Assembly: GCA_964187785.1 (NCBI GenBank)
Contig: OZ076414.1
Span: 48,732,001 to 48,796,000, forward strand
Source of the DNA: Amphiscolops sp. MND2022
Lineage: Eukaryota
Length of the DNA stretch: 64,000 nt
Direction: 5' to 3'
Below, piece after piece: positions 1,313-27,943 of the stretch; within the stretch, counting starts at the first letter, position 1, and every line of letters starts with the position of its first letter. The notes below the pieces were generated by a model. The model saw nothing but the letters and a program-made list of their open reading frames with translations. It ran no database searches and had not been told where the DNA came from. The position numbers were made by a program, and so were the translations under genes.

Positions 1313-2474
1313 CCCAGGTTGTCACGCCATGGCCCGCCATCCATGACTCATCCATGATTCATGGCTCGCTATGGCATGGCCCATGACATGGGCAATGTAC
1401 GGAAATCCATGAATCGTGAATGAGTCATGGATGGAACTCCTGTGCCATGGCTGAAAAAAAATGAAACGGACCGTTTCAATAGCCAAAGCCGCTTCAAAAA
1501 AGATGGATATGTTCCTGTTTTTGACCACTCTCCATTACTTGAGCTGAAACAAAATGGTTAGAAGCATAATGTCGGATATTCAATTCGAAATATCGAAAGC
1601 AAAGCATTCATTAATTGAAGAATGTCCTTATTCTGGGTTGGAAGCTCACTTCTAGTGCGGTATAATATAAATATACCAAACGTGACAGGACTCACGACGA
1701 GAACGTGGCCTCCGAAAAATCCAAAAAAACTAACATCTTATAATAAATAAGGAAAATTAAAAAAAATCCTACTCAAACGTAAATGAATCTCGAAATAACG
1801 AAATAATGAACGAAAACAGTTCAAGTGAGTGAGCTCAAATTTTTATCGTGGCTTTGATCTATATACAAATTAGAATAAATCTACATTTTCTCTAAAATTG
1901 ATCTGAAAAAAGGTTTTTGTAGCAAGATTTCTTGAAAAAAAGACACGAAATCAACAAAATTACAGAACGATTAATGGGTATTAGACCATATAATTCCAGA
2001 ATTCAAGTCGAAATCGGTCGAGGAATTGATCTAGATACAAACTAGAATAATTGTACTTTTTTTCTAAAATTGATCCGAAAAGACGCGTTTTTCCGCAATT
2101 CCATCGAAAACCATCCCCGAAACCATCAAAAGCCCACCTAATGCTAACTAAATTCTTACCTATCTCGCGGCTTCGGGATACGCGGTGCTGAAAAGCGTCC
2201 TTTATGCTACACGGACCATTAAGGTAACCCTCAGAATCAAGAGACAGAACAAGAGACAAAAACTGACACAGTAATAGAAAAATTTCGACTCTGGACGGAA
2301 TTTTCAACATGGCTCATCGTGGATGAATCATGGGTCAAAATCATGGATGATGATCCATGGGGCCATGCACTGCCATGTGCCATCCATGATTTTCCATGAA
2401 AGTAGGAGTAATTCGTCAAAAAATCCATGATCATGGATGATTTTCCATGAACGAGCCATGACAGACAACCTGGG
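1313..2474. mobile_element. Non-autonomous CMC/EnSpm-like DNA transposon (CCC...GGG termini, 2-bp TSD CT)
   Basis: Perfect 11-bp TIR CCCAGGTTGTC (1313-1323) / GACAACCTGGG (2464-2474). CT on both flanks (1311-1312, 2475-2476). Dense subterminal CCATG/CATGG arrays at ~1325-1450 and ~2308-2460. Confidence 0.75.
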
Positions 2475-4470: not shown

Positions 4471-5936
4471 TGTAACAGACCCTTCTGGTACCGCAAAATC
4501 ACACGATTTTTAAATTTTGACATGATCAGAAAATTGGTTAAAAATTCAAATTCGATGTGTGACGTGGCACTGAGCATGTGATTGCTATTTTCGCTGTTTC
4601 GCCATTTTCAATGCAAAACAGGGACGAGAATAGACCGAGCGGGAACACGGAGTACGAAACAGCCTGAGAGCTTAGAGAATTCTAAAAAAGACTCGTTTTG
4701 AGGTGCCAACCCCGGTTTTTATCGATTTCAGCATTATGCTACCTTGAGTGGCGGAAGCCGGTGAAATGAGTCTTTTAGCTTGATTATCCTCGTTTGGTGC
4801 TTGGAACCCCTGCGCCACAGCTTGTAGCTGTGTGGATTGCCAGTTTGACGAGTGTTTTAATGTATTTTCACTGGTTGTATGTAACGACAAGCTCCCACCA
4901 TGGTCGCTGCTTCATCATAGAGATAGAGGAACCTACGGCATGGGTATTTGACCGGAACAGGCGCCCATGACCATTTTGCCTCCTTCGGGTAAAAGTTGTC
5001 CCGTCAGAGGAGGATTCCGCCTCTTGTGGAGTACTCGTCAACGTTTTCCAGTCTTTAACTTCTATCCGTAGCGCGAATTACGCGTTTCTATCGAAATTAC
5101 CACTCAGACAGCCTTTAAAAATGAAGGTGGTGGTAAAGATAAATTTCTGCATCACAGGTCATGGTGTAAAAAGTAGCTCATGAGCTAGAACATCTGGTAT
5201 TATTGATATTTCACTGCACAGTCAGCATGGCAAGATGATCATTAGAGGGGCACAAGCACGGATGCTTGCTTAAGCAATTTCAAGACGCATTTCAAGTAAT
5301 TGCAATTGGTAGCAATATGCTAGTGAAAGTGAAGGTCAGAAAGAGTCCGTGTAATTAACGAGTTTGAGTTCGTTTTCACACTTTCTCGGTTCGCACCTCC
5401 TTTTTTCTAGCTATTTTTGGGACCCTCTCTTGCTCCGAATCGTTCTGGGCTTTTTCAATTTAGCTGGCAAGTCATTTTTAAAGACACGGAGTCTGTTGGC
5501 GGAATATGATAGAAATTGCCAAATTCTACTTCCCAGCTGGTCCTTGAACGAATATTTCAAACTTTTGATGTTGATGTCGTCGATGCAAGGTGATCGTTAC
5601 AGTAGTTACATCTACTAGCTCGAACGCTTGTTTGTGCAATTATAGATACTGTTCCGAATTATAGATATTATTAGATATTATTCCGATACCACCCTGAAGA
5701 TGGAAATTTACACCGTTTATCCTTGGCTTCGTTTTTAAAGGCTGTCCAAACGGTGGTCTGAGGCGAAAATTCGAGACGAATGCCCGTTATTCTCAGCAGT
5801 TAGAGCCTGGAACAGGCCGGAGAGCAACCTTTAAGACGGTTCCCACTCCTCGGTACCGGTAATCCTAATGGAGATAAAATGAGCTGGTGTCATGGTGGTT
5901 TGTCCCGGACCATATCCATTAGCGCTTGCCGTTACC
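4471..5936 (+). mobile_element. Non-autonomous DNA transposon, TGTAAC...GTTACA family, outer copy (TSD TTT)
   Basis: Starts TGTAACAG and ends GCTTGCCGTTACC, with TTT on both flanks. Internal modules 4500-4870 and 5690-5935 align by eye with the copy at 60856-61627. Confidence 0.7.
4880..5601 (-). mobile_element. TGTAAC...GTTACA family element nested in opposite orientation inside the outer copy (TSD GTA)
   Basis: TGTAACGACAAGCT at 4880 and GATCGTTACA ending at 5601. GTA at 4877-4879 and 5602-5604. 4900-5165 is the reverse complement of the family's right-end modules. Confidence 0.7.
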
Positions 5937-6715
5937 TTTTTAGTCGGCGCTTCATGAAGTGAAACGCGACTATTATGGTGACTCTTTTTTTGAATCCACA
6001 CGAACTGACCAAAATAGTTCTCAGAAGTTCTACAAAAAATTATTGCACCAAATTGCAAAATTGCACCATTTGGCCTAGCGAACTGAACCAAAAATTCTTT
6101 TCTGTTTTCCCGCGTAACATATCATACCGGGCGAGACCAAATGTTCCCCCCTTTTAATTTTTTTCGGCACTGTGAGACTATTTTCGGAAAAAAAAGTTTT
6201 CCCCAAAGGGTCCGCCTTCAATTTTTTTGCTTTGTGAGATTTGTTCTGAAAATAAGAGTTTTCCCCCTTCAATATTTTGATGTTTTGCGACAGAATGGAT
6301 GTTGAAAAACCCCCAAAGGGTCCCCTCTTTCAGTTTTTTGGCATTTTGAGACTTTTGTCTATAATTTTTTTCTCTCCAAACTGTCCCCCTTTCAGTTTCT
6401 TTGATATTTTACAACAGATTGGGTGTTTAAAAATCCCAAAGGTTCCCCGTTTCAGTTTTTCGGCATTGTGAGACTTTTTTCGAAAATTTGTTTTTTCTCC
6501 AAAGGGCCCCCTTCAACTGCGACAAAAATGTTGACAATTTCGGAAGTGTCCCTCTTTTAGCGCGCCAGGGGCTCGCGCTAGCAGGCCCCGGCGCGCCACC
6601 CAATCAATTTTTTTGGTTTTTCGATTTTCGAGTACTGTAAATTGACACTTGGAAGTCCTTTTACTATTTTTGAGCCTTGGATATGGCGCCGACTTGGGCC
6701 GGTCCCGGCTTGTTT
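5937..6715 (+). mobile_element. Helentron-associated/HINE (DINE-1-like) non-autonomous element
   Basis: 5' T-run, then subTIR AGTCGGCGC (5942-5950) with a partial inverted repeat CGCGACTA (5965-5972). 3' subTIR GCGCCGACT (6686-6694) is followed by the stem-loop GCCGG-TC-CCGGC and TTGTTT. Internal degenerate repeats (GGCA(C/T)TGTGAGACT, CCCCAAAGGGTCC). Confidence 0.7.
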
Positions 6716-8944
6716 AATAATACTTCAGCTACCCATTTTAAGTGCGGTCTATCGAAAGCACCGACTAAAAATTGTAAACTGTCTAGATTGGAACCCACAT
6801 TCTCTCTCTACAAAGACCTAACTTGATTACCGTGCAATTTTCTTTCGTTATATGCATTTTATCGGTATTTATTCACGGAATTCGCTAATCATTCACCCCT
6901 ATGCAAGTAAAACAAAAGCGCCATAAAAACTACATTGGAATGGGAATTAAGCGGTTCTCATTGACAGTTGATTGTAGGGTTGGACGTTCAAGGGTTTTTA
7001 TTTGTTCCAGGTAATTGTATGCAATAGAGTAGGAGTGTCTGGAGGTATGACCAAATTATTAAAGGCAAAACGCGAAAAAGTCATTTCACCTTTTTCCGAG
7101 TTTTGGACCCTTTTTCTGATTTTCATAGATGACTAGGGATGAAGCATGGACGTTGGTTTTCCATGTGGTTCACAAAATCATTTCTGTAAATTCAAACTTC
7201 AAAATGGCTGGGATGGTACCAGCGATCACATTTTGTGAAGTGCCGTTGAATTCCAGTACAAGCTTTCCATTGAAATCTACTGTGTCGAGTTTTTTCTTCT
7301 CCAAGAATTATTATAACAAAAACCCGTGGGCGTTTGCCATAGTTCATTCAAACCTTTTTTCATGTGCTCGTCAATTTTTCTCGCAGCTCCCTTCAAAAGA
7401 AATAACATGGTCCAACATCTTTGCTACATCAGCATAATAAACCAAATTTGTTTTCACCCAAAGCAGCAACTCTTGGAGCGCATATCGCTAATTCGTTGAA
7501 AGAAACTTGCTAAACTTTGAGAGTTTTCCTTTCCACGTTGCGTCTTACAGACCCTGTCTGGTCATGCAAATTTCTTGAAATAACTCGAAGGATTAATGAT
7601 ACTTCCGAGAGATTCCTTGAAAAAGTCCCTGAAATACTTGCAAGTGCTTGAAACAAGTGTCTGCCAGCCTACTGAAGCATATAAAATTTTCAAAAAAAGT
7701 TCAACTGAAGGCAGAGACCAGTTTGCGACAAATCTTATGCCTAAGTGTGATTAAGAAAATGAAAGTTGAAAGAAAAAACATACTGTAGAAAAAATCATCT
7801 TGTAGAAAAAATAGTCTAAGTGGAAGATCAAGAAAACCAACAAATTACCAAAAAATTTCTGCAAAAAACGCAAAATAAAAAAGAACCCAGATTATTAAAA
7901 TTGATTTTTCCCTCTAATGTGACGCTGCAGAATCATCAAATAGTCAAAAAATGTATGAGATATTTCAAACAAAATGGGTGCAGCCTAATTTCCTAAATGG
8001 ATCAATATTACAAAACAACTTGAAATAGTTTTTTTCCGGCTTGCATAGATTTAATAATATTTGACGTTCAAAAGCTTTGCTCGTTCAACTTGCATATACT
8101 TTCAATCGTCATGATTCTCTTTTCATTATTTAAGTGAAAGTTTCTGAAGTACAGATTATTAGAACTTGATATGTAGGGAAAATATATGGAATATTTCATA
8201 GGTGAAAATAAACAACTCAACGTTCTTTGATTTCGCCGAGTTTCTTTAAGTGTGACTAAAGTTGATGAAAAGAGAACGCAGTGTGAATTTAAGTATATTG
8301 TATCAGTCACTCCAGCACTTGAAGTAATATTACTTTGAGCTGACAATCATTGCAGTTTGTTTGCTTCTCAGGTTAGTGCATACTTTTTTAACAGGAACTA
8401 TTTTTAATGCAAGCTGCATGCCTCAAGTAATTGCAGGTCTATGTTTGAGTGACATTGGAAAAATTGTACTTCAAACTGCTCTTAATCGAATAGAAAAAAG
8501 TGTTAGACGTTAATCAAAAACTTTAAGAAATTTAAGTGGTAGTGATGATGAAATTTTAAAATTTCGAACAAAACCAACGCAATGCCGAATATACCCTAAG
8601 GGCGATCATTTGGTCTCGGATCGATTCGAGGATACTGTAAAAACTGTGAAACACTCAAAGGTAGTACATTTTAGTCTCCTTAGGGGCCTCTGGAACTCTT
8701 TAGAACTTAAGCGTAAATGTTAGGTGAAATTTATGAAAATTTATAATAGTGGACGTTTCACGGTGACTGAAGGAAAAAACTTGGTATTGTAAGAACCGTG
8801 TACTTTTTGCCCAAAACGCGCCTACTAAAAAGAATTATTGTTGAACAATTATCATTTCTGCATCAAAATTGGGATTTAGATCATAGCAATGAATAAAAAA
8901 TGTACTGATCTTTTTGAGAAGATAAAAGATATTCCTGAAAAAGT

Positions 8945-11900
8945 TCAAACTAATTGTTGGGAAGAATGGTCTTTTTTCTTCCTTTTCGACCATATCACAG
9001 AAAAAGGAATGAAGGCCGCACTCAGGGCCCAACAAGCTCGTTTTGAACAAAAACGCAACCTGTTATCGGTCAATACAGGCCGCCATGCAGTTTGGCATTT
9101 TTGGAGTTTTTAAAAATTGTTTAAGAGGCACAGAAGGTTTTCAGACACAGATTACTGGCTAATTTTTTATCCAAAAATAACTTTTAGTTTCTCAGTAACA
9201 TAAAAATTTGTAATACGAATACTTCATTAGTAGTTTGTTTTTATTAACGGTAGCTTAACTTGGGAGGGGGGTTTGAAAGTTTACAAAAAAAATTATCAAC
9301 ACACCTCCTCCACACTCTAGATGAAAAAAGTGGAATTTTTCAAAAAAACCCAGGAAAAGTGTGAAACATTCAAAAATGTGATGGAACGCATCGTTGACAT
9401 CACAAATCCAACACAAAGCCAAAAAAGGAAACACATCCCCCCTCCACACTCTACATACAAAAAAAAATCAAAAATTTAAAACTTTTTCAAAAACCCAGAA
9501 ATGGTGCGAAACGTTCAAAAATCTTGTTAAAAGCGTTGAAGCCGTCAAAAATGAGGGGGAAAAGTACCAGTATACACTTCTTCAGGACACGTAAAATCTC
9601 AAAAAATGAACAGAAAACAAAAACTTGCTTCAACTTGGAGTTTTTAAGCAATTTGGAGCAAATTTTTGACAGTGGAAGACAACTGGAATTAAACTTTTAG
9701 AGAAATTGTTTCTGTAAATCTGATTCTTCCGGGAGTTTTTCATCAGAAAACGAAACTCAAATTCAAGAGTGCCCATGACTTGTCAACTCATTTTATAGCG
9801 GTGACTGAGTAACTGTGAATGGATGCAAAGCCGCATTATGCAAAGTTTGACATGAAGCAATTTATCGCATTGATACATATCCATACTGAGCAAAGAAGTT
9901 GAAATACTTAGAATTCTATGACCCTGAAAACCTTGGTTCATCTTGTCTTGCACCATGAAAATTACGTAAGTCATGTTTATGAGTTGTTTTATGAAAAGAA
10001 AACAGACATCGATCAAGAATAACTATAGTCATTGCTTCCATTCTTCTTGCAAACAGAGACTCAACAGAACTATTAACAAGAAGAAAAGCCGGTAAAAGCA
10101 AGGCTAATGCTTATCAAGTCCAATTGAGCCTCATATTATCTGGTAATCATTGACAAATATATCATACTTACACCTTCTGACCGTGATCATAAAAGTCTTA
10201 GAAAATGGAGATCTTATTAGAAAGCTCCTTTCGCGAAGAGGAATATTGAAATTTAGCCGCTAAACGTTTCATTTGTCTAGTTTTGGGCTGTAAATGAGAG
10301 GTTAGTGAGCCCGTCATTTAAGACTTTACCAGTCGGCTGTCTACCACTAAGATTCATCTCAATTTCTAAGTTTCCAGGCATTTATATTGCAATTATTAAT
10401 ACAAGAGATCAAAGATATCCCCTGGGAAATCATCAATCACCGAGTTTTGGGTTCTCAAGAACAACATTTTACGCTATCGAAACTTCTAACCCTTGAACTT
10501 CTCAAATCAATTTTTGGGTATCTTTCGGCTCAGTGTAACAGTGTGTAATCAATTGCAGGTCTAGTTTTTATCCATTGCGTCAGTTTCAGTACTGGATTTT
10601 TAAGCGAAATGTAAAACATATAGAGGTCAATTGCACTTGATCAAATTACCCCTGGTCATTTCAGGTAAAGCTAGCAAAGATACTTCAAGTGACTTGTTCT
10701 CTAATTGAAAAAGTCCTATCGATAGTTTTCCAGAATCAAAACCTACATCTCGGGCTGTACATTCTTGCAGTGTTTTGGCCTAAGTGGAGAACAAAAGTCC
10801 AAATGCCTGTCGATAATAGGTTTCATTGTGTTCAAGTATTTTAGCGATAGTCGAAAAACATGAGTTGAAAAACATGATGACTCCACCACTCCAATTTTAT
10901 GCTTTCCAGAATTTAGGCTGTTTTCAGAGAATAGTTTAAATTGACATTTCGGAAACTTTTACAAAAAAAACTGTCATGCGAACCGAGGGTTTCATTTCGA
11001 TTACCTGCCAACTAGAAAAGGTACTGCTTGACAGGTTAGAGCAAGCAAAGTCTACATTTTGATAAAATTGCATTTGTTTTATGAAAAAGATTGCATTAAA
11101 TTGAACAAAAAGGAAACCTTACGCTCATCTTCGTTATCAAAGGTACTTCTTGAACACGTCCAACTGAGACACGGAGCTTTTACTCTATCAAAATTCGAAT
11201 TTTTCAGAATGCTTCTCCCTACAAACGAGGCTTCTCAGGAATTTAACGTTGTGACCAATCAAGTGCATGATCTACACCGTCTCAAACAGTTCATCATAAC
11301 CTCCAGAGCTCAACGGTACATCACCTGGAATTTTTCTCTGAAATACTACAGAGACAAGTATTCCCAATATTTAGAGCTGTACATATTCAAGTAGTTGACA
11401 GTGCGTAGTGCTGTAATTTTTGATTTTCTTCCCATTTTCGAGAAAAGAACGTTTTCTGCTAAAATTTTCTCTTCATTGATGCCGAGAATTATATGATTGG
11501 TTTTGAAAATTGTACTTCGCTATTTTTTCAAGTCATGCAATCTCAACTCAACAACAAACATGAGATTGACAACAACTGTCAGTTCTAAAAGCAACTCTGA
11601 AGACATTCAAATTAGGTTCAACAGCTTCGCTGCACAGTCACACCAACTGTGTCGGTACCGCTTTTGAGCTTATCTAGCGTCGCGCTCTGCCAAGTCTGTT
11701 TGCTTAATTGTTTTCCGGTTGTTTGGCTCACGTTAAAAAGAAATGCCACTGGGATACGCCTATTGACGCTACTGTTCATAATTAATCACAAGTACAAAGA
11801 GCTGACGTCGCTTTCATGTTCACGCAGCACGTCGCTCTGTTTAGTCAATCTTCAATTTGCAACGACGAAGATCTATCTGCCACTCGGGACACGCTTCTTG

Positions 11901-14900
11901 CAGCTACTGGTTAATAAACAATTATTAAATGCAATGACCGACGTTGCTCCCATGTTTACATCGCGTGCGCTCTGTTCAATCAACCTGCAATTGGCAACTG
12001 CGGAGATCTATTGATCCAATATCAATCGTGTAGCCGGTGTGCTCGACCAAAACAAAAATTCCCTTCAAAAGCTGTTCACGATGAACTAGCAAATGGAAAT
12101 GTTGTTAATTTTTTGGTCTCGATTTTGTTACAAGCATTGGTACCTAGCTTCAAAACGTTTATGAATTTTACCAAAAGAAAAAAATAGGAAGCCATTTCGG
12201 TGGTGTCAAAATTTTGTGCCAGTTGAACATTGTTCTGTGTGCGACAAGTCCACCGTCAATTTTCATTATGAGCTTCCGTTTACTTCAAGTATCTTCTCAA
12301 TGAAATTTTTTTTCAGACTTTTGTCTTGAGATCATCGGTATCACAGCTTAATCACCAGTCAAAATCGTTCAGAAATCAACCTTGATTTTCAGCTCTCTCT
12401 TATCCTCAAACGATCTCGAGTTTGGAGAAACCCATATTGACGTAGCATCATCTGATAAACGAGTTCTTCGCATGACCACAAACACTTATAAAAACAGTGA
12501 AGTCACGTACATCAACATCAAATTGATCAAGAAATAAAGAGGATCAAGATGAGTATCGCCTGCAGCAGAGAGTGGGACTTACTGTGAAGAAATTTTGGGA
12601 AATGTTAGCGAATGTGGAAAACATTAGCATGGGTCCTCTCACTTCAGAAAGCAATATGGGGAGAAAAAAATCAACAAGAGGATTGCTCCAACCTATATGA
12701 GGCTGCTGAGATGAAAACACAAAAAACTGCTAACAAAAAGGAAAAAAAATTGTACAACTCATTTCAAATGTAATTACGGCATGCAAGTTTTGCTATTGTT
12801 TCTAGTTTTAATCTGTTTTCATATCCATGAGTCGTAGTGAAATAACCGTTTTTCGATTGTTTTTGTTTTTTTTGCATGTTTTTAGCGTTGAATTATTCCA
12901 TCTTTTTCTATCGCGCTTTTTTTGATGTAAACTTCTAGTCTGTTTTCGTTTTGTTTGGCGCTGACTTTATATTTTCTTTCATCTAAATCCTCTATAAAAT
13001 CAAACTGTATGTCGTTTCTGTTTCCATTGCATATTCTCCTGTCCTCATGAACGCTGTGTCCCAGTTCGTCCTGCAACGTATCGATTTGAGCTTTGTTAGT
13101 TTTGATCTAGTGATTTTGTTCCCTTCCTGTGCTATTTGATGGTTTGTCCGATCTTCGCCTCTTTCCTAAACTTACATTGATTTACATTCTTTTACACTGT
13201 AGTTGATTTACCATTTTCCAGTGTGCTTCATTCTGTTTGAATTACCCTGGCTTTTCTATTGTCCATGTGAAGTTTTTATATCAATTTTACTTTGTCATAC
13301 TAGTTTTTGTAGTCGTGATATGGTGGAGGCAATGCATGAACAACATCTGGACTTTTTCAAACAACATCGGAAACGATTTCGGTACCTGGTGTTAGAAACG
13401 GAACGAAGGATTGGGCTTGACTTTCCTCCAGTATGAAAATTACGCATTTGGAGTTCATTCTTCTACCTTTGATTACTTTTCCGGCTTTGAGAATCAACCA
13501 CTCTACCATGTTCTTTGTGAGTGCGATTCCAGTAATAGAAAAGGTTACAATGTAGCCTGCCTCTATTCGATTTTCTGCCAACTTTTGGCGGATTGTTCGA
13601 GTCACGTCAAGCAATGTGAGATTATGAATCGTCTGCAGGTTGCAATGAAATACAATGTAAAAGAAAACAAAACCTTGACGGCGCAGTGTCGATGCAAAGT
13701 CCGTTTGGTTCAAATCGGACGAGCAAAAGTGTTCAAAGTGGATTTTTACCGACTGCCCCGTTTAGCCGATATCAGTAGTTAATTCAAGGCCCATCGGTTG
13801 CAACTTTGTACAGTTTAGACATTCTCAATGACGGATACGGAAGCATCAACACTGCTTATTTGTATCTTTCGAATGACAAATCCAAAACTTTGTAAAACTT
13901 GCATGGTTTATGAAAATTGGCACGAATATATTCTTCAAACCAGTGTTTCCTTGTCACCGTCAGCCAGTGCTTGACAGCAAAAATTGTATTTTTGGATAAA
14001 TATTGAGCGGTTGGGTATCATTAAATTGGATCATTGTGTAATGACATGTTTGCACTATCAATAATTCATCTGAACGCTGGTCACGCTTAGTAGGAATATT
14101 TGTTTGTATGATGAACTAGTGCCGTTGGATTCAAACAAATTGGATCATCTTAGTGGCATTTTAAAGCTGTCATTACTTCACCTGGACGTTGCGAAGCTGT
14201 CAAACCTTGAAAAAAAAGTATCAGAATCAAGACATTCGGAAACGCTGAAATTTCTTGGAGTGTAAATTTAGTTCTATACATGTACTGTCTAACCAATGAG
14301 TTAGCTCAGCTATTAAGGTATAGTACTCCAGCGTACAAGCGTGGTTTATTCAGGACTGTGTACTGAATAGTTAAACTGCAACACATGCTTTGTTTGTCAT
14401 TGCAAAGTTAATTCTTCCTTTTCAGCTCCGTCAACAACTTTTCAGTTCCAACCAATTCTTTCAAGACTCAAAACGTCACGGTAGAGTAAAAACAGTCATA
14501 GATTGTGCCCACTCATACACATCATAATATTTTGGTTGTCCTTAAATCCGAGAGCGTTTACTGTTACGAAAAATAATTACCACTCAAGCTCAGAGTTCAA
14601 TCGAGAGTAAAAATAGAATACGGCTAAATTGTATACTCATTTTTGAATTTTTATCTTTGGTGAACAATAAGGTACATTCTTCAACTTGTCAGCGTTTGAG
14701 CTACCATGAAACAACCGATGCAGACTTTCATCGTTGTGTGTTTTAACTCGCGGTTCACGTTTTATGAAACTTGGTTCAACAAAACAATAGCAATAATTGA
14801 AGGAGTATGGTGGAAGTACGACTGGTCAATAAAAATTCGGATTCGATCCCAAAAGATTTGTTTCTTCTGCTGAGAGCTGAATGTGTATTGGGAACAAATC

Positions 14901-15146
14901 CAAGCAGCTTCAATCTAACGGACATGGTAGAAATGCCATTCACTACAACAAAAGTCTATGATCGTTCCGAGTTGCCGTATGGTGTACGACAGCTTCAGTT
15001 CGACATTGACTGTCGAAATCTACCGTTTTCATAAATCAATTGGGTTGTATGACAGACTTGGAAAACTTAGAAAGTTACTGGGATATTAGAAGTACCCCTG
15101 AATCACAGAAGAATATTCATGTTCTCTGTCGCCAAAGCATACCGGC
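8945..15146 (+). repeat. Left arm of ~13.2 kb imperfect palindrome
   Basis: Collinear reverse-complement match to 15264-22132 along its length, with indels. Examples: 9781-10235 vs ~20845-21300, and 15040-15146 vs 15264-15370. Confidence 0.92.
12385..12700 (+). pseudogene. Decayed PC4/Sub1-like ssDNA-binding small ORF, copy 1
   Basis: Translation across one frameshift gives ...DKRVLRMTTNTYKNSEVTYINIKLIKK/KEDQDEYRLQQRVGLTVKKFWEMLANVENI. This resembles the PC4 pattern (FKGK-LIDIREY...GISLNPEQWSQLKEQI). Family call by eye only. Confidence 0.4.
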
Positions 15147-15543
15147 ACAAATCAAGAACAAATTGCTTGTGACAGTCAAATTAAATCAGAAACTAGTCCA
15201 GTGAAGCATTGCCCGCCAGCGCCAAAGAAGTATAGAGTTGAAAAATTCAAAAAAGCATCATTGGCCGGTATGCTTTGGCGACAGAGAACATGAATATTCT
15301 TCTGTGATTCAGGGGTACTTCTAATATCCCAGTACCTTTATAAGTTTTCCAAGTCTGTCATACAACCCAACTGGTACTCTAAAAAAGGTATATTTTGATA
15401 GTCAGTGTCAAACAAAAGCTGTCGTACATCATACGGCAACTCGAAACGATTATAAATACACATTCAGCTCTCAGCGGCATAAACCATTCTTTTGGGATAT
15501 CGAATTTGAGCTTTTATTAACCAGTCGTCCTCCCACCACATCA

Positions 15544-15864
15544 CAGTGCATAGGCAAGCTATTTTGCTGCTTGTCGTGAAATCCGGGACACGAAAATTGA
15601 GAAAAGTTGTGGAATCCAGGAGGTTTATTTCTGCAATCTGATTGGTTCGTTTTGCAAAACGTTTTTGTGGAATCCGGGACAAAGCGGTATGCCGATAGTG
15701 CGTACAGCTAAGCATTTGTTACTGGAATCCACAACAAAATCCGTGGAATCCGGGACTTATAACGTAATTTGCCAATTTTGCACGGTTAAAAGTATGATCG
15801 TGGAACCCGAGGTATTGAAAGCACAAAACTGTTCTGTGAGCAAATTTAGCTTGCCTATGCACTC
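15544..15864. mobile_element. Tc1/mariner-like MITE inserted in the right palindrome arm
   Basis: Perfect 17-bp inverted repeat AGTGCATAGGCAAGCTA (15545-15561) / TAGCTTGCCTATGCACT (15847-15863). CAGTG-like end, TA on the right flank and CA on the left. Internal GTGGAATCCGGGAC repeats. Absent at the matching left-arm position (~14810). Confidence 0.55.
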
Positions 15865-17379
15865 TAATACATACTCGTTAATTATTGCTATTGTTTTGGT
15901 GAACCAAGTTTCATAAAATGTGAACCGCGAGTTAAAACACACAACGGTGAAAGTCTGCATCGGTAGTTTAATGGTAGCTCAAATACTGACAAGTTGAAGA
16001 ATGTGCCCAATTGTTCACCAAAGATCAAAATTCAAAATTGAGTTACAATTTGACCGTATTCTATTTCTACTCTAGGTTGAAATCTGTTCTTGAGAGTTAA
16101 TGATTCTGCTTAACACTAAATGCCTTTGGATTTAGGAACAACCAAAAGATGATGATGTGTATGAGTGGGCACAATCTATCATGTGTTGCAATTTAACCAT
16201 TGAGTACATAGTATTAAATACACCACGCTTGTACTCTGGAAAACTATATCTCAATAGCTCAGGTGACTCATTGGCTAGACAGTACATGTAGAGAACTAAA
16301 TTTACACGCAATTTTTGCTGTCAAGCACTGGCTGGGGTTGACAAGGAAACACTGGTTTGAAGAATATATTCGTGCCAAACTTCATAAACCATGCAAGTTT
16401 TACAAAGGTTTGCATTTGTCAGTCGGTAAAAAACCAGTTTGAACACTTTTGTCTTGTCTGATTCGAACCAAACGGACTTTGCATCGACCCCGCGCTAGCA
16501 ATGTTTTGTTTTCTTTTACATTGTATTTCATTGCAACCTGCAGACGATTCATAAGTTCGCATTGCATGACGAGACTCGAACAATCCGCCAAAAGTAGACA
16601 GAAAATTGAATAGAGGCAGAGTACATTGTAACCTTTTATTTTACTGGAATCGCACTCGAAAAGAACATGGTAGTGTGGTTGAAGCCGGAAAGATAATCAG
16701 AGGTAGAAGAATCAACTCCAAATGCGTAATTTGATCCTGGAGGAATGACAAGCCCAATCCTTGGTACCTTTTCTAACACCAGGTACCGAAATCATTTCCG
16801 ATGTTGTTTGAAAAAGTCCAGATGTTGTTCATGCATTGCTTCCACCGTATTGCGACTACAAAAACTAGTTTGACAAAGTGAAATTGATATAAAAACTTCA
16901 CATGGACAATGAAAAGCCAGGTTAATTGCTTGGAACACTGTTTTTTTCGTTGCATAGGACAACCCCAGTTTCAAGATCTTTGGGGCGTTTTTCAACAGAA
17001 TTGCTGTGAAACTTAGAGCTGTGAGGTTATGAATCTAGATTTGAAACCCACGAGGTAAAAACGTGTATAGGTCGAATTATGGTTACTTCACTAATTTTTG
17101 AAGATTGAACAAAAGTATCGAAACAAAAATAGAAATGTTGTGGATTATCTAAATAGTGAATACTTCAACGACGTACTGAATTGAAAGAAGGAGAGGATTG
17201 AAACGGAATGAAGCCAACGGGAAAATTGTAAATCAAGGTAAATCAAGTACAATGCAAACGAATCTAAATCAATGTAAATTTCGTAAAGAGAAAAAGATCG
17301 GATAAACCATCAAATAGCACGAGAAGGGAACAAAATCACTAGATCAAAACTAACAAAGCTCATATCGATACGTTGCAGG

Positions 17380-18700
17380 ACGAAATGGGACACAGCGTCA
17401 TGAGGAGAGGAGAATATGCAATGGAAACAGAAACGACATACAGTTTGATTTTATAGAGAATTTAGATGAAAGAAAATATAAAGTCAGAGCCAAACAAAAC
17501 GAAAGCAGACTAGAAGTTTACATCAAACAAAAAGCGTGATAGAAAAAGATGGATTATATCAACGCTAAAAAACATGCAAAAAAACAAAAACAATCGAAAA
17601 CTGTTATTTTATTACGACTCATGGATATGAAAACAGATTAAAACTAAAAACAATAGCAAAACTTGTATGCCGTAATTACATTTGAAATGAGTTGTACAAC
17701 TTTTTATTCCTTTTTGTTAGCAGTTTTTTGCTTTTTCATCTCAGCAGCCTCATATAGATTGGAGCAATCCTCTTGTTGAATTTGTTTTGCCCCACATTGC
17801 TTTCTGAAGTGAGAGGACCCATGCTAGTGTTTTCCACATTCGCTACCATTTCACAAAATTCCTTCACAGTGAGTCCAACTCTCTTCTGCAAGCGATATTC
17901 ATCTTGATCCTCTTTGTTTCTTGATCAATTTGATATTGATGTACGCGACTTCACAGTTTTTATAAGTGTTTGTGGTCATGCGGAGAAGTCGTTTATCAGA
18001 TGATGCTACGTCAATATGGGTTTCTTCAAACTCAAATAGCACAGGACGGGAACAGAACGAAATGGGAAACAGCGTGAATGAGGAGTGTATTCAAGGGATA
18101 CAAAAACGATATATATTTTATAATTTCATAGAGACATTAAATGAAAGAAAAGTTGAAGTCAGCGCCAACAAAACGAAGGCAGTCTAGAAGTTTACATCAA
18201 ACAAAAAGCGTGAAAAAGATGGAATCAACATTAAAAACGTGCAACAGAAACAAAAACATTCGAAAACCTTGATATTTGTCTTCGATACATGGATATGAGG
18301 ACAGATTCAAATTAGAAACTTCAACAAAACTTGAATGCTGTAGTTACTTTTGAAATGATTTGTACAACTTTTCATTCCTTCGTGTCAGCAGTTTTTTGGT
18401 TCCTGATCTCAGCAGCCTCCATATAGTTTGGAGCGATCCTCTTGTGGATTTTTTTCTCCCCACATTGCTTTCTCAAGTGAGAAGATCCATGGTAATGTTT
18501 TCCACATTCGCTACCATTTACCAAAATTCCTTCACAGTGAGTCCCACTCTCTGCTGCAGGCGATACTAATCTTGATCCTCTTTTTTCTAGATCAGTTTAA
18601 TGTTGATGTACGTGACTTCACTGTTTTTTAAGTGTTTGTGGTCACGCGAACAAGTCGTTTATCAGATGTTGCCACGTCAATACGGGCTTCTTCGAACTCG
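17380..18700. repeat. ~670-bp diverged tandem duplication within the right palindrome arm
   Basis: ~17380-18030 and ~18050-18700 both match left-arm ~12430-13080 in reverse complement. Confidence 0.75.
17750..18032 (-). pseudogene. Decayed PC4-like ORF, copy 2
   Basis: EFEETHIDVASSDKRLLRMTTNTYKNCEVAYINIKLIKK/KEDQDEYRLQKRVGLTVKEFCEMVANVEN, with the same frameshift as copy 1. Confidence 0.4.
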
Positions 18701-18731
18701 AGATCTTTTGAGGATGTGAGAGAGCTGAAAA
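18410..18731 (-). pseudogene. Decayed PC4-like ORF, copy 3
   Basis: Same protein without the frameshift but with several in-frame stops (NT*KNSEVTYINIKLI*KKEDQD*YRLQQRVGLTVKEFW*MVANVENI). Confidence 0.4.
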
Positions 18732-21700
18732 TCATGGTTGATTTCTGAAAGCTTTTGACTGGTGATTAAGCTGTGATACCGATGATCTCAAGACAAGAAA
18801 AAAATTAAACGAGAACATACTTGAAGTAAACCGAAGCTCTTGAGGAAATTTGAAAAACAGAGACCTTGTCGCAGACAAAAGAATGTTCAACTGGGACAAA
18901 ATTTTGACACCACCGAAATGGCTTCTTTTTTTTTCTTTTCCTAAAGTTGATGAACGTTTTGGAGCTAGATACTATTGCTTGAAACAAAACCAAGACCTCA
19001 ATAGTAAAACCATTTCCATCCGCTAGTTTAGAATGGATTTTTTGTTTTGGTCGAGCTGACCGGATGCATGATTGATATTCGATCAATAGATCTCAGTAGT
19101 AACTAACTGCTAATTGATGAAACAGAGCGACACGCTGTGTAACCATGAAAGCGACATCGGTCCTTTGTATTTGATGATTGTTTATTAACCAGTAGCTGCA
19201 AGAAGCGTGTCCCGAGTGGCATATAGATCTCCGTAGTTGCAAATTGCAGATTGACTAAACAGAGCGCCACGCTGTGTTATCTTGAAAGCGACGTCCGCCC
19301 TTTGTACTTGTGATGACTTTCAAACAGTAGCTTCAATAAGTGTGTCTCAGTGGCCTTTGGTTTTAACGTGAGTCAAAAAACCTGAAAATAATCACGCAAA
19401 CAGACTCTGCAGAGGGCGACGCTGGATACGCTCAAATGCGGTTCCGACACAGTATGTGTGAATGTTTATCGCGGCCGCTGATCTCAATCTGACTCTCTTT
19501 ACGGTTGCTTTTATAGCTGACAAATGTTGTCACTCTCATGTTGCTGAGATTGCATGACTTTTGAAAACAGCAAAGTATAGAATTCAAAACCATCCTTTTA
19601 ATTCTCGGCATCAAAGAAGAGAAAATTTTAGCAGAAAACGTTCACTCTGGAAAATGGGAAGTAAATCAAATTGTACAGCTCTATGCACTGTCAATTGCTA
19701 GAATATGTACAGCTCTAAACGCTGGGAGATACTTTACCGTTGAGCTATCGTGGTAATGATATAATGTTCGAGACAGTAGAGATCATACCCTTGATTGGTC
19801 ACAACGTTACATTCCTTAAAATCCTCATTAGTAGGAAGATGCATTCTGAACCATTCAATTCTTGATAGGGTAAAAACTCGGTGTCTCAGTTGGACTTATT
19901 CAAGAAGTACCTTTGATGACGAAGATGAGCGTAAGATTTACTTTCTTTTCATTCCAATGCAACCTTTTTCATAACACAAAGCTTCTCGCTGTCACATCAA
20001 TATGTAAACTTTGCTCCAACTTGTCAAGCAGTACTTTTTTTAGCTTGCAGGTAATAGAAAGGAAACCCCCAGGCTCTCATGACAGTTTTTTTGTAAAAGT
20101 TTCCAAAATGTCCATTTTTTCTATTATTTGAAAGCAGCTTAAATTCTCGGAAACATACAATTGGAGTGATGGAGTCATCATGTTTTTCGACTCATGTTTT
20201 CCGACCATCACTAAAAGACTTGAACACGATGAAATCTAGTTTCGATAGGCATATGGAATTTTTTCTCCAGTTAGGCGGAAACATTACAGGACTGTAGAGC
20301 CCGAGATGTTGGATTTGATATGAGGTTTGTTGTTGGATTTGTTAAAGTATCGATAGAGTTTTTCCAAAGTTTAGAAAACAAATTAACTTGAAGTATCTTC
20401 GCTAGATTTACCTGAAATGACCAGCGAGTAATTTGATCAAGTGCAATTGACTACTATCTGATGTACTGTTTGCCTAAAAATCCAGTATTAAAACTGACGC
20501 ACTGGTTGTAAACTAGACCTGCAATTGATTACACACTGGTACACTGAGCCAAAATATATTCAAGAATTGAGATGAGAAGGACGAGGGTTAGAAGTTTTGA
20601 TAGCGTAAAGTGTTCTTCTTGTAAACCCAAAACTCGTTGATTGATGATTTTACAGGGGATATCTTTGACCTCTTTTTCTATTATTCGCAATACTAAACGT
20701 CTGGAAGCTAAGAAATTGAGATGAATATTAGTGATAGACAGCTGACTGGTAAAGTCTTCCTTGACGGGCACACTAACCTCTCATTTACAGCCCAAAACTA
20801 GACAAATGAAAGGTTTAGCTGCTAAATTTCAATATTCATCTTCGCGAAAGGAGCTTTCTAATAAGATCTCCATTTTCTAAGACTTTTATGATCACGGTCA
20901 GAAGGTGTAAGTATGATATATTTGTCAATGATTACCAGATAATATGAGGCTCAATTGGACTTGATAAGCATTAGCCTTGCTTTTACCGGCTTTTCTTCTT
21001 GTTAATAGTTCTGTTGAGTCTCTGTTTGCAAGAAGAATGGAAGCAATGACTATAGTTATTCTTGATCGATGTCTGTTTTCTTTTCATAAAACAACTCATA
21101 AACATGACTTACGTAATTTTCATGGTGCAAGACAAGATGAACCAAGGTTTTCAGGGTCATAGAATTCTAAGTATTTCAACTTCTTTGCTCAGTATGGATA
21201 TGTATCAATGCGATAAATTGCTTCATGTCAAACTTTGCATAATGCGGCTTTGCATCCATTCATAGTTACTCAGTCACCGCTATAAAATGAGTTGACAAGT
21301 CATGGGCACTCTTGAATTTGAGTTTCGTTTTCTGATGAAAAACTCCCGGAAGAATCAGGTTTACAGAAAGAATTTCTCTAATAGTTTAATTTTAGTTGTC
21401 TTCCGCTGTCAAAAATTTGCTCCAAATTGCTTAAAACTCCAAGTTGAAGCAAGTTTTTGTTTTCTGTTCATTTTTTGAGATTTTACGTGTCCTGAAGAAG
21501 TGTATACTGGTACTTTTCCCCTCATTTTTGACAATTTCAACGCTTTTAACAAGATTTTTGAACGTTTCGCACCATTTCTGGGTTTTTGAAAAAGTTTTAA
21601 ATTTTTGATTTTTTTTGTATGTAGAGTGTGGAGGGGGGATGTGTTTACTTTTTTGGCTTTGTGTTGGATTTGTGATGTCAACGATGCGTTCCATCACATT

Positions 21701-22139
21701 TTTGTATGTTTCACACGTTTTCTGGGTTTTTTTGAAAAATTCCACTTTTTTCATCTAGAGTGTGGAGGAGGTGTGTTGATAAATTTTTTGTAAAATTTCA
21801 AATACCCCCCCTCCCAAGTTAAGCTACCGTTAATAAAAACAAACTACCAATGAAGTATTCGTATTACAAATTTTTATGTTACTGAGAAACAAAAAGTTAG
21901 TTTTGGATAAAAAATTAGCCAGTAATCTGTGTCTGAAAAACTTCTGTGCCTCTTAAACAATTTTTAAAAACTCCAAAAATGCCAAACTGCATGGCGGCCT
22001 GTATTGACCGGTAACAGGTTGCGTTTTTGTTCAAAACGAGCTTGTTGGGCCCTGAGTGCGGCCTTCATACCTACCTGTGTGATATGGTCGAAAAGGAAGA
22101 AAAAAGACCATTCTTTCCAACAATTAGTTTGAGTTGTAT

Positions 22140-22236
22140 TCCCAAGGTTTAACAAGACGCCCGCTAAACACCGGGATATTTTCCGCCTTATCAAAAAAAT
22201 CAGGCGGAAGCGAGATTCGAACCCAGACCCTACTGA
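22140..22236 (-). mobile_element. Possible tRNA-derived SINE fragment
   Basis: B-box-like GGGTTCGAATCTC on the minus strand (~22211-22223). Shares CGGAAAATATCC and AGCGGGCGTCTTGTT with ~57863-57897. No A box seen. Confidence 0.3.
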
Positions 22237-24158: not shown

Positions 24159-24989
24159 ATGTCGGACATTCAAAAAGACATCGAATCGTTTGAAGACCCC
24201 AAAATACGAAGGGTTCTGCTCCAACTATATGGAAATTTACTCGTCAAAGAAGAAGAAATTATTGTGTTACAAAGCCGCGTTACGGAGCTGGAGACAAGGG
24301 TGTTGGAGAATGAGAAGTATATGTCAAAAGACTGTTTAATTTTTGAAAACATGCCCAGAACAGATGACAGCATGACACTATCCCAACAGGTTTGCGAGTT
24401 TTTAAAGATTTATCTTAATCACAACACCAACCCTGCAAATTTCAAGGCGTGTCACGAACTTGGTCGCGGAAAAGGTATTTATCCTCCTGCAGTCATCGTA
24501 AAATTCATATACTTTGGTGACAAAAATGAGATTTTCCTGAGAAAATCATGGCTTGCACGAGCGAGAAACCCAAAAAATGGCCGCCCAATTTTCATCAAAG
24601 AGAGACTCCCAAAATTTCAAAAAGAGTTAAAAGAGCATGCGGAATCAATGGACATTGTCACGACTACGAATAACTGTAACATCAAAGTTTTTACCAAAAC
24701 CACGGATGGATCCTTCAAAAGTGTCACTGTTAACACAAAAAAAGCTATTAACGATATAAAGAGTGAGGCAGTGGTAAAACAAAGAGCAAGCAGTGGTAAA
24801 ATGTACAACAAGCCTGCAGACCCAAAAACGCCAGAAAGAGATAAAGATATCGATGACAATAATTTATTAAAAAGAGTAGCAAAAAGGATACGAGAATCCC
24901 CTGGTGATGGAGTAGCCGTACTAAAGCAATTTTGTTTGGACACCCGAGCTAATATGGAAGAGGAAACGATACCCAAAGGAGACTCATAA
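24159..24989 (+). CDS. LINE ORF1 protein (coiled coil + RRM-like + CTD), 276 aa
   Basis: Motif LETRVLENEKYMSKDCLIFENMP matches the ORF1p 'LE..SR..NLII.G.PE' pattern. PPAVIVKF and IFIKERL segments. Lies upstream of ORF2. Confidence 0.8.
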   Translation: MSDIQKDIESFEDPKIRRVLLQLYGNLLVKEEEIIVLQSRVTELETRVLENEKYMSKDCLIFENMPRTDDSMTLSQQVCEFLKIYLNHNTNPANFKACHELGRGKGIYPPAVIVKFIYFGDKNEIFLRKSWLARARNPKNGRPIFIKERLPKFQKELKEHAESMDIVTTTNNCNIKVFTKTTDGSFKSVTVNTKKAINDIKSEAVVKQRASSGKMYNKPADPKTPERDKDIDDNNLLKRVAKRIRESPGDGVAVLKQFCLDTRANMEEETIPKGDS

Positions 24990-25114
24990 ATTGCAGTCAA
25001 ATTTAAAAATCTGAAACAAAGTAACTATAGCAAACGTTCCATTTAGGCAGTGAAAAATACAAAATAAAGAATTTGACTGCAATTTCGGTAACACCGCCAA
25101 CATCAACTCTTTAA

Positions 25115-27943
25115 ATGAATCTAACATCTACTGAGAACCAACAACATGCTTTCCAGACTTTTCTTTTTGGTTTAAATATACGTTCACTAAGACATAACTT
25201 TGAAGAATTGGAATTACAGGTGGAGGAATATTTACCTGAATTGATTTTTCTAACCGAAACATGGCTCACAGAAAGCGACCCACTAACTCATTATAATATA
25301 AATGGTTATCAAGAGATAGAATCGAAACCTAGAATTACAGGGATCCGTGGAGGTGTAGCTTTCTACGCTAAAGATGAAATTGCGTACGAGGTACTGGAAT
25401 ATGAAAGTGAACTTGAATGTCTCATAGGAACTTTCACGTTTAGCAAAGGCAATAAGAAAAACTTTTGTGTTGTCTATAGGCCAGATTCCATACTTTACAG
25501 TAAGTTTCTTGAATTAATGGAATCGCTTCTTAGTTTCTTAAGGTCACAGAAAAATGATTGCATCATATTCGGCGATTTTAATATAAATACACTTATTGAA
25601 AACTCTGAATCGATAAACTACACAAATCTTTTAGCAGCCTACGGGTTCAAAATACAAAACTCCGAACCAACACGTGTCACAAGTACGACGGCAACTTGCT
25701 TAGATCACATTATTTCCAGCAACGAGATCAATACAAAAACAGTGAAAATAACAATCAGTGACCACTACGCGATTGAGACTGATTTATCATGGCTAGGAAA
25801 ACAAAATAAAAGAAGTTCGGATAATAATTATACACTTGTTAGAAATCTCAATCATATCAAGAAAAATAAAATTCTTAATTTCCTTTTCCTTCTGGATCAG
25901 AAACTACGCCAAATCAATGAAAATGCAGACGTTGATACTTATGTAACTAAAATAATTGACTGCATAATTAACTGTCTTGATCGCTTTGCGCCAGAAAAAC
26001 CACCTAGTGAAAAGAAACATTCACCTTGGATAAATAATAAGATTAAAAACCGCATTCAAAAACGGAACCTTTTGTTTCAAAAATGGATTAAGGATCCTAG
26101 TGAACAAAATCGTCAAGCCTTAAAGAACTTGAGAAATGAGATTAGAGGACTAATACGGAACGCTAAACGCGAGCAAAACTTCAAAGAACTAGGCTCTAAT
26201 CCTTCATCCAAAACGATTTATAAGAAATTAAAATATAAAAATGTTCAAAAGCAACAAGTCCACGGATCCCTCGATGCAAATAAAATGAATAAACATTTTG
26301 CAACCATTGGTCAAACTCTCTCTTCAAACATTCCTCACACTGACTTCACAAGCAATATAAAAACTGTGGAGAATAGTATGGTTCTGAATAAAACAAATAT
26401 TGATGAAATAACAGCTATTCTAAAGAAGCTCAAAAACAAACGGAGCACTGGTCCCTCAGGCATAAGCAATGAAATATTAAAACTATGTTCCCCTGTTATC
26501 GAGCCATATATATGCAAAATTGTGAACAAATGCATAGAGGAGGAAACATTTCCTGAGTGTCTGAAGGTGGCAAAAGTAATCTCACTGTATAAAAAAGGCG
26601 ATAAAACAAATCCCGAGAACTATCGTCCCATAAGCCTCTTGAGTCCAATAGGCAAAATAATTGAAAAAATACTTCATAAACAAATGAATAAGTATTTTAC
26701 CAAATATAATTTATATTCGAAAAATCAATTTGGATTTCGCAGTAAAAGGAGTTGTAATCACGCGGTAGCTGAATTAACGGATTATATAAGGAATGCAATT
26801 GATGAACGGCGCTCTGGCAGCGCTTGCTTTATTGATTTAGAAAAGGCATTCGATACACTTGATCATTCTATCCTCTTGCAAAAGCTATATAGATACGGCT
26901 TCAGAGAGCCAATTTTCAACATCATCAAAAATTATCTTTCAAATAGGAAACAATATGTATTACAGGATGGAAAAAAATCGGATGTTCTAAGTATAAACAC
27001 TGGTGTTCCACAAGGTTCTGTTCTCGGACCATTTCTATTTCTCGTTTACATTAACGACTTACCAAAGGAATGCAATCTGAGCATGATAACATTATTCGCA
27101 GATGATACAACCGTCTACAATATTGGCCAAAATACATCTGAGGAAATTTGCAATGATATCCAAAATCTTAGGAACTGGTTTAAAGAGAATAAACTAACTG
27201 TCAATATAGGAAAATGTGAGTATGTTTGTTTCGGTCGTGCTCAACCTCTTAGCGAAGAAGCTTTTGGCCAGAGAATTTCACTAAAAGATCATTGTAAATA
27301 TCTTGGTGTCACAATTGACGAGAAACTCAATTTCAAAGAGCATATTAAATACGTAACAAAGAAACTGAATAAATTTTGTGGTTTGATGTATAAGGTAAGG
27401 CACATATTTCCCGCGAGATGTCTCTTACTGTTTTACAAAACCATAGCTAAACCAATAATCAAATATGGCCTAATGAATTATGGTGCAACTGCAAAAACGA
27501 ACTTGGATCCTATCGAAAAAGCGCAACGAAGGATATTACGGGCAATTTTCTTTAAGAAGCAAACAGACTCACTAGAAAATGTGTATGCGTCACATAACAT
27601 ACTGACAATTCATGAAACCTATATTGCTGAACTCGTATGTGAATTATTTCGACAATTGAGGGGTAATTCGCCGTTTGACTTTGTGGCCGGTAGTTTCATA
27701 CCGCCCGATATAAACACCCGCAGAAGAAAAAGAGGTTTACTGAAAATAACTTTCAGCAGAACAGAAACTAAACGGCGATCGTTAAAAAATTCAATTGTGA
27801 AAACGTACAATTGGTTGAAAACGCTCGATCTTATCCCATCAAATATTAAAAACTTAAGTGAAAATGCAACAAAAAACCTCATAAACGGTATTGCTCATAA
27901 TTATGTTTCGAACAACAGAGACTTGTTCAATGTTTATTTTTGA
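25115..27943 (+). CDS. LINE ORF2 protein: apurinic endonuclease + reverse transcriptase, 942 aa
   Basis: APE motifs LNIRSL, LTETWL, GGVAFY, GDFNIN, LDHI, SDHY. RT motifs NYRPISLL, QFGFR, FIDLEKAFD, GVPQGSVLGP, FADD, KYLGV. Confidence 0.97.
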   Translation: MNLTSTENQQHAFQTFLFGLNIRSLRHNFEELELQVEEYLPELIFLTETWLTESDPLTHYNINGYQEIESKPRITGIRGGVAFYAKDEIAYEVLEYESELECLIGTFTFSKGNKKNFCVVYRPDSILYSKFLELMESLLSFLRSQKNDCIIFGDFNINTLIENSESINYTNLLAAYGFKIQNSEPTRVTSTTATCLDHIISSNEINTKTVKITISDHYAIETDLSWLGKQNKRSSDNNYTLVRNLNHIKKNKILNFLFLLDQKLRQINENADVDTYVTKIIDCIINCLDRFAPEKPPSEKKHSPWINNKIKNRIQKRNLLFQKWIKDPSEQNRQALKNLRNEIRGLIRNAKREQNFKELGSNPSSKTIYKKLKYKNVQKQQVHGSLDANKMNKHFATIGQTLSSNIPHTDFTSNIKTVENSMVLNKTNIDEITAILKKLKNKRSTGPSGISNEILKLCSPVIEPYICKIVNKCIEEETFPECLKVAKVISLYKKGDKTNPENYRPISLLSPIGKIIEKILHKQMNKYFTKYNLYSKNQFGFRSKRSCNHAVAELTDYIRNAIDERRSGSACFIDLEKAFDTLDHSILLQKLYRYGFREPIFNIIKNYLSNRKQYVLQDGKKSDVLSINTGVPQGSVLGPFLFLVYINDLPKECNLSMITLFADDTTVYNIGQNTSEEICNDIQNLRNWFKENKLTVNIGKCEYVCFGRAQPLSEEAFGQRISLKDHCKYLGVTIDEKLNFKEHIKYVTKKLNKFCGLMYKVRHIFPARCLLLFYKTIAKPIIKYGLMNYGATAKTNLDPIEKAQRRILRAIFFKKQTDSLENVYASHNILTIHETYIAELVCELFRQLRGNSPFDFVAGSFIPPDINTRRRKRGLLKITFSRTETKRRSLKNSIVKTYNWLKTLDLIPSNIKNLSENATKNLINGIAHNYVSNNRDLFNVYF

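Follow-up and report, generated by a model that had tools for sequence, protein, structure and literature searches.

The stretch of DNA analysed here (the window) covers 64,000 nucleotides of the Amphiscolops sp. MND2022 genome (assembly GCA_964187785.1, contig OZ076414.1, positions 48,732,001 to 48,796,000 of the forward strand) and contains a 13.2-kb palindrome: two inverted arms (8945-15146 and 15264-22132) surround a spacer of 117 nt (15147-15263). The palindrome belongs to a multi-copy family of giant palindromic elements and is among the oldest copies of that family. The account we favour, and regard as probable, is that it is a decayed copy of a family moved by Maverick/Polinton-type machinery, and that three later events reshaped it. 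The family is an unusual variant of an established type of element, and the window copy is a relic, most likely inert.

A palindrome that belongs to a family

A repeat finder and BLAST of the two halves both found the arms to be collinear, and a global alignment between them comprises 5,644 aligned columns with 88.5% identity (318 transitions, 333 transversions). Pairing of this extent is far beyond chance, and the palindrome, which had been proposed in an earlier, sequence-only reading of the window, is real. The substitutions, indels, miniature inverted-repeat transposable element (MITE) and tandem duplication which that reading listed as differences between the arms are all present (Table 1), and its argument that the structure is not a fold-back read artefact holds, as such chimeras give identical arms. 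Sliding identity between the arms varies by zone: it is 96-100% between 8945-10400 and 20680-22132, with one 300-bp segment at 100%; 81-85% in 10450-12320; 91-93% in 12325-13955; and 74-90%, with many indels, in 13956-15146. The window contains no N letters and no third copy of the arms, and no open reading frame (ORF) in the arms exceeds 134 amino acids.

Read data were examined as Logan contigs placed on 9450-15449 at a likeness of at least 80%, from four runs of one sample. Each run yielded 896-1,006 contigs; in run X1, 65 were at least 99% alike, 111 were 95-99%, 282 were 90-95% and 445 were below 90%. Where a contig matches the window letter for letter, its word depth is about 14-60, depending on the run; added up over all contigs, depth in 200-bp bins ranges from 300 to 4,700 in X1 and reaches 12,000 in X4. 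Because the summed depth is far above the exact-match depth, the bins of this span must each be repeated about 10 to more than 100 times. Parts of the left arm (10538-12234 and 14064-14482) are matched by contigs with 0-1 differences, and there are many positions at which all contigs carry a letter unlike that of the window; letters found only in the window are private mutations of one old family copy. The sequence-only reading had noted that single-copy arms with non-recurrent ends would make this a one-off inverted duplication. The arms are multi-copy and the ends recur at other loci, which contradicts that case, and the single-copy, one-off interpretation is therefore removed.

With the left-arm ORF at 13396-13779 as query, 14 related ORFs were returned, all on contigs of ENA assembly ERZ25074608. 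The LINE proteins of the window have exact matches on ctg185268 of this assembly, which is 100% identical to window positions 14159-34989 (L011) over 20.8 kb; it is the source of the window and not independent support. All compared family copies thus come from the window's own assembly and one genome. Eight further loci (L001/L002, L003, L004/L007, L005, L006/L008, L013, L014 and L015) were inspected, and all nine loci, including that of the window, share a plan of inverted arms of about 7.5 kb around a centre of 1.4-1.7 kb that holds a TRAF-like gene, except that the centre is deleted in the window copy. The youngest copy, on ctg180116, has arms of 7,550 bp that are 99.85% identical and a centre of 1.63 kb; arm identity in the other copies is 98-99%, ~97%, ~94-95% and ~94%, and 88.5% in the window. 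As the same succession of arm, centre and inverted arm is found at other loci, the fold-back plan is the family's own and not an accident of this locus. The window copy is tied to the family by both of its arms, which are 77-89% identical to L001-L008 in collinear blocks, and by the family terminus and G-run at both 9229 and 21848. Tandem arrays in L001 are limited to 84 bp x 6, inward of the end, and 137 bp x 2. The suggestion that the palindrome is a giant non-autonomous fold-back element was thus right in the main.

Family copies are insertions, and the family has been mobile. Three of three complete copies, of 16.7, 17.1 and 15.3 kb, begin with AGTAGT, end with ACTACT and are flanked by perfect 6-bp direct duplications: CATTCA (ctg180116), GTGGTA (ctg183346) and AACGTT (ctg185112). 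AGTAGT is also found at the arm ends of L001, L002, L003, L004, L005, L007, L014 and L015 and at window position 9229, and a G-run lies about 40 nt inward of the terminus in all copies compared. The copy on ctg180116 splits a Gypsy integrase ORF exactly: the translation of the left flank stops at ...GIRHS, and the right flank, starting from the second copy of the duplication, resumes the same frame with the remaining integrase core.

Some copies have further peculiarities at their ends. The left terminus of the ctg183346 copy is present twice together with its flank, at L004 2065 and 5980, 3,915 bp apart, a local tandem duplication. L013 (inverted homology from 1677 to 18719, arms 98-99% alike) has no AGTAGT within about 180 bp of either end, and scans of 1501-2600 and 17900-18900 found none; it may have lost part of its ends, or have ends of a different type. 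Some copies show, by eye, a tRNA-like stretch in reverse complement, with motifs of the T-arm and the D-arm, that lies 60-140 nt or so in from the terminus, at L001 5610-5690 and at the same place in L003, L004 and L007; it is missing from the window, L014 and L015. Rfam gave no match in the window or L001, and ARAGORN called no tRNA, including in this stretch.

The sole recognisable gene of the family lies in the centre. In the youngest copy its ORF encodes 344 amino acids with a Pfam TRAF-mep_MATH match (2e-19) and matches TRAF5, TRAF4, TRAF6 and TRAF3 in the PDB at 5e-16 to 1e-9, the TRAF3 match spanning the coiled coil. Its Atlas neighbours are short TRAF/MATH proteins. The protein therefore comprises a coiled coil and a MATH domain, with no RING or zinc-finger part. 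The ORF is intact only in the youngest copies; it is shortened in L003 and bears frameshifts and stops in older copies.

Three arm ORFs, o127, o209 and o197 (127, 209 and 197 amino acids in L001), remain open in several diverged copies (L001 8720-9103, 10001-10630 and 11467-12060, mirrored in the right arm). The ratio of nonsynonymous to synonymous substitution rates (dN/dS) between old copies is 0.3-0.6 for these ORFs, like that of the MATH ORF; off-frame controls were noisy, at 0.2 to 2.0. Pfam searches of the arm ORFs returned nothing beyond a sub-threshold chance match, the neighbours of o209 and o197 in the ESM Atlas were all unnamed or weak, and an AlphaFold prediction of o209 with seven relatives had no confident fold (predicted local distance difference test score, pLDDT, 32).

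Ends, centre and surroundings of the window copy

A more sensitive alignment, together with alignments of the termini, placed the family terminus (AGTAGTTTG..., then the G-run) at 9229 and its mirror, which reads GGTAGT, at 21848. To judge from these alignments, the true ends of the window copy are 9229 and 21848, 284 bp inside the edges of the palindrome; 8945 and 22132 were considered as diverged or replaced termini, and this was rejected on the same alignments. The outer 284 bp on each side (8945-9228 and 21849-22132) have no homology to the other family copies compared, yet are inverted copies of one another right up to the termini, and must therefore be flank that was copied from one side to the other. 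A 54-amino-acid ORF from this segment had no useful match among 1.84 billion representatives. The hexamers beside the window termini, TTCATT and AATGAA, are reverse complements of each other and not a direct duplication. A target-site duplication and end motif are missing at 8945/22132 because a later event inverted and duplicated 284 bp of flank. The sequence-only reading was accordingly correct that neither is visible at the palindrome's edges, but the family end motif is present 284 bp inward. Its other suggestion, an old inverted duplication of a large DNA element, applies only to a small and late part, the outer 284 bp; the palindrome itself is the family plan.

The apparent loop has a different history from the one its name implies. 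Window positions 13252-15252/15264 align as one block with L001 9987-12016/12028, straight through the spacer, with the right arm picking up again at L001 position 11900. The 117-nt spacer thus belongs to the left arm and has lost its counterpart. L001 12029-15795, which holds the inner arm ends and the whole centre, has no match in the window. These alignments suggest that the whole TRAF centre and the innermost 1.1-1.2 kb of both arms, about 3.9 kb in L001 terms, were lost in one asymmetric deletion. The 117-nt spacer reported earlier is therefore real, but it would be a leftover of this deletion and not a designed loop. Most other differences between the arms are family sequence missing from one arm only, a pattern that we read as independent decay of the arms.

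The window arms are each other's closest relatives only in 8945-10400 and 12420-13160 (93%); elsewhere they are 80-90% identical to each other and 78-90% identical to copies at other loci. We read this pattern as an old insertion whose arms had come to differ about as much as family members do from one another, with patches later copied from arm to arm.

The sequence-only reading had found it notable that a palindrome with so short a loop should persist. Divergence of the repeats and distance between them are among the factors reported to lower inverted-repeat instability (PMC10164571). In the window copy, three features should make a hairpin harder to form: the central deletion, an arm divergence of 10-20% over most of the length, and an insertion that lies about 275 bp away from the spacer. 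With indels also interrupting the pairing, its persistence is less odd than it seemed. The surprise is not the survival of the window copy but the presence of many young, near-perfect 7.5-kb palindromes in one genome.

Table 1 Positions within the window of the palindromic element and its parts.
Feature	Position	Strand	Remarks
Outer left 284 bp	8945-9228	+	Pairs with 21849-22132 at ~96-97%; flank, not element
Left terminus AGTAGT	9229-9234	+	Followed by ~35 nt and the G-run, as in other copies; aligned with L001-L005, L007, L014, L015
Left arm of element	9229-15146	+	Collinear blocks 77-89% identical to arms of L001/L003-L006
"117-bp loop"	15147-15263	+	Continuation of left arm; partner in right arm deleted
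Right arm of element	15264-21848	-	Terminus 21848-21843 is GGTAGT on the minus strand, 1 substitution from AGTAGT
Outer right 284 bp	21849-22132	-	Inverted copy of flank 8945-9228
Youngest identity zone	8945-10400		Interpreted as late copying between the arms, past the terminus and into the flank
MITE-like insertion, right arm only	15540-15868	+	22-nt imperfect inverted ends, 91% matching; L001 has 9 bp there
Tandem duplication, right arm, ~660 bp	17376-18699	+	17376-18033 / 18053-18699, 83% alike
Remnant of arm ORF o209	13396-13779	+	128 codons open; right arm 16403-16696, 98 codons; coding status uncertain

The palindrome is surrounded by animal repeats, namely a Gypsy element, a BEL/Pao element and a long interspersed nuclear element (LINE) that encodes endonuclease and reverse transcriptase. 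The LINE (24159-27943) has an intact ORF1 (276 amino acids) and ORF2 (942 amino acids, endonuclease and reverse transcriptase); its ORF1 protein is identical on four contigs of the assembly, and the LINE family appears young and is possibly active. Nested long terminal repeat (LTR) retrotransposons occupy 30709-55996, with the Gypsy pol at 34737-38846 and the BEL/Pao pol at 52468-55335, and 99% direct repeats are found at 30709/55311, 31100/46215, 32042/47063 and 47880/55697. Inside these 99% repeats, at 31159 and 46274 (minus strand), a 25-nt sequence (AGTCGTTGGTTATC...) shows a likeness, perhaps by chance, to the terminal 26 nt of the ctg180116 copy. Just outside the right edge of the palindrome, the minus strand of 22200-22232 has a motif like the T-arm of a tRNA (GGGTTCGAATC), which is followed by a T-run. 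ARAGORN calls no tRNA there, and it is possibly a remnant of a short interspersed nuclear element (SINE). Two tandem 82-bp units, 78% alike, lie at 40491-40654, and direct repeats of an interspersed repeat, 81-85% alike and 56 kb apart, lie at 4471-4823 and 60856-61220.

Proposed origin and its alternatives

An intact member of the family measures 15-17 kb and consists of two arms of about 7.5 kb, near-identical in young copies, around a TRAF centre of 1.4-1.7 kb. We propose that the family would possess no integrase or polymerase of its own and would be moved in trans by a retrovirus-like integrase of the Maverick/Polinton type; copying would perhaps be carried out by the protein-primed polymerase of the helper, with the repeated end motif serving "jumping back". 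If the arms are near-identical at the start, their divergence would date a copy, as LTR divergence does. In the window copy, an asymmetric central deletion would have spared 117 nt of the left arm, which now form the loop. The arms would then have decayed independently, by one-arm deletions, the 660-bp tandem duplication and the MITE-like insertion. Finally, patches would have been copied from arm to arm, and the latest of these (8945-10400) would have overrun the terminus and duplicated 284 bp of flank as an inverted copy, a step that would have erased the target-site duplication and moved the palindrome edge outward. The family would accordingly be a non-autonomous element with Maverick-type ends, and not a Maverick proper.

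Several observations weigh against this account. No autonomous partner with the same ends turned up (no DNA search of the assembly was made), Pfam found none of the Maverick polymerase, integrase, capsid, ATPase or protease in any called ORF of the nine loci, and the arm ORFs may be either element genes of no recognised family or chance. Mavericks are not alone in making 6-bp duplications. The (AGT)2//(ACT)2 end motif is documented for vertebrates (PMC8097293), and the inverted repeats reported for vertebrate Mavericks reach at most 1,447 bp, about a fifth of the length of the family's arms. How the deletion and the copying in the window copy came about, and in which order, is deduced from a single sequence. 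The junction 15263/15264 is absent among the read matches listed for 9450-15449, a span that excludes the outer edges.

The alternative with the most to recommend it, which we still hold to be rather improbable, keeps the palindromic family but assigns it to another superfamily (Foldback/Mutator-like, P-like such as Galileo, IS3EU or Dada) or to a transposase encoded in its own arms. Long inverted arms with subterminal 84 bp x 6 tandem repeats do recall Foldback, no Maverick gene was recognised by Pfam in the family copies, and the arm ORFs, with dN/dS of 0.3-0.6, belong to no known family; o209, on the other hand, has no confidently predicted fold (pLDDT 32), which counts against this alternative. 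Target-site duplications measure 8-10 bp in Foldback/Mutator elements, 7-8 bp in P-like elements and 6-7 bp in IS3EU and Dada elements, a comparison that suits the last two and disfavours the others. The combination of (AGT)2//(ACT)2, a perfect 6-bp duplication and a length of 15-17 kb is the published signature of Mavericks (PMC8097293).

The remaining alternatives concern this locus, and we give each of them very little credence. That two family copies or haplotypes were joined head to head at the centre during assembly could be imagined, given that graph assemblers can misjoin high-copy families, that window and ENA contig stem from one assembly and that the central junction is missing from the matches listed. 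Against this, 284 bp of flank foreign to the family is common to both arms, as is a 1.45-kb zone of 96-100% identity, so that they must be local partners, their 88.5% identity is not that of a fold-back chimera, coverage is about 100x to go by the contig name, and the fraction of sampled words present in the four runs is 0.57-0.67 around the centre, in line with 0.60-0.68 along the arm; a misjoin at the centre is unlikely. A one-off inverted duplication of ordinary repeat-rich DNA, slightly less probable still, would account for edges with neither target-site duplication nor end motif and for the inverted-duplicated flank of 284 bp, but not for eight other loci that share the arms, their order, the fold-back plan and defined ends with duplications, nor for the family terminus inside both window arms. 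Equally improbable is that the host has co-opted the window copy to silence the family through hairpin RNA or small RNAs made from it. A transcribed 6-kb inverted repeat would in principle give long double-stranded RNA homologous to tens to more than 100 copies; no run labelled RNA was among those returned, and the arms decay like neutral sequence.

The Maverick-type account can be extended to the origin of the family itself, in a form that we offer tentatively and consider doubtful as a whole. The family could be a germ-line-fixed snap-back derivative of a Maverick-like virus, produced by a strand switch in protein-primed replication, which would give it two identical ends and the genome length of its helper; it would spread as a parasite of that helper, its arms would be kept identical in the active lineage, and its RING-less TRAF could blunt host TRAF signalling. 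Both parts of this origin, the strand switch during replication and a length constrained by packaging, are inferred. If true, an animal genome would here harbour the defective-interfering genome of a DNA virus in integrated and long-lived form.

Should the Maverick link itself be correct, the family would be an unusual non-autonomous Maverick-type element, 90% inverted repeat, of the genome length of its helper and with one gene of immune-signalling type. It would then be informative about the replication of protein-primed, virus-like elements and about the means by which their ends stay alike. The family has been successful, with tens to more than 100 copies, and it would also bear on whether packaging length is a constraint on parasites of virus-like elements and on the tolerance of a genome for many near-perfect 7.5-kb palindromes. 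Assemblers and repeat annotators will probably overlook or misjoin palindromic families of this kind. The window copy exemplifies a long palindrome disarmed by central deletion and arm decay, yet partly re-homogenised.

Comparison with known systems

Mavericks of vertebrates have end motifs of 6 bp that are conserved, mostly 5'-(AGT)2//(ACT)2-3' and also (AG)3...(CT)3, perfect 6-bp duplications, a size of 16,862 +/- 1,678 bp (range ~12.7-24.6 kb), terminal inverted repeats of 46-1,447 bp and two gene modules that point to the centre (PMC8097293). The repeat within their end motif is taken as serving "jumping back" in protein-primed replication (PMC8097293). The family has the end motif, the 6-bp duplication (missing in the window copy) and the size (15.3, 16.7 and 17.1 kb). 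It differs in that the Maverick core genes were not detected, its one recognisable gene being the RING-less TRAF in the centre, and in that its inverted repeats are about 7.5 kb each and make up ~90% of the element, compared with 46-1,447 bp.

Foldback and Mutator/Foldback elements, such as Tm1 of root-knot nematodes (PMC3169594), also have long inverted arms, a short middle and subterminal tandem repeats, and in both cases copies are mostly non-autonomous and variable in size. The arms of the present family, in contrast, are mostly unique sequence, with only the two short arrays in L001, its three complete copies all have 6-bp duplications, and no Mutator-like transposase was seen. Snap-back or copy-back defective viral genomes (PMC13506859) have an end copied in reverse complement, a near-complete palindrome and dependence on a helper, a set of features that the family may share. 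Those genomes are transient in infected cells, whereas the family is integrated in the germ line at many loci and long kept, and its arms have no homology to known helper genes.

The patches of the window copy (97-100% and 93% on a background of 80%) resemble the outcome of arm-to-arm gene conversion in palindromes of ape sex chromosomes (PMC11168930), but the latter bear host genes, extend over tens to hundreds of kb and have long spacers, whereas the window copy is a dead transposon. A TRAF-C/MATH gene is carried as cargo by the giant Gypsy elements of planarians named Burro (PMC6431247), and a "TRAF" gene label occurs in the legend of a gene-map figure in a paper on adintoviruses (PMC8502044); in both cases the carrier differs from the family described here. 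We therefore file the family as Maverick-ended and non-autonomous, because its ends, duplication and size fit Mavericks while its gene content and repeat length do not.

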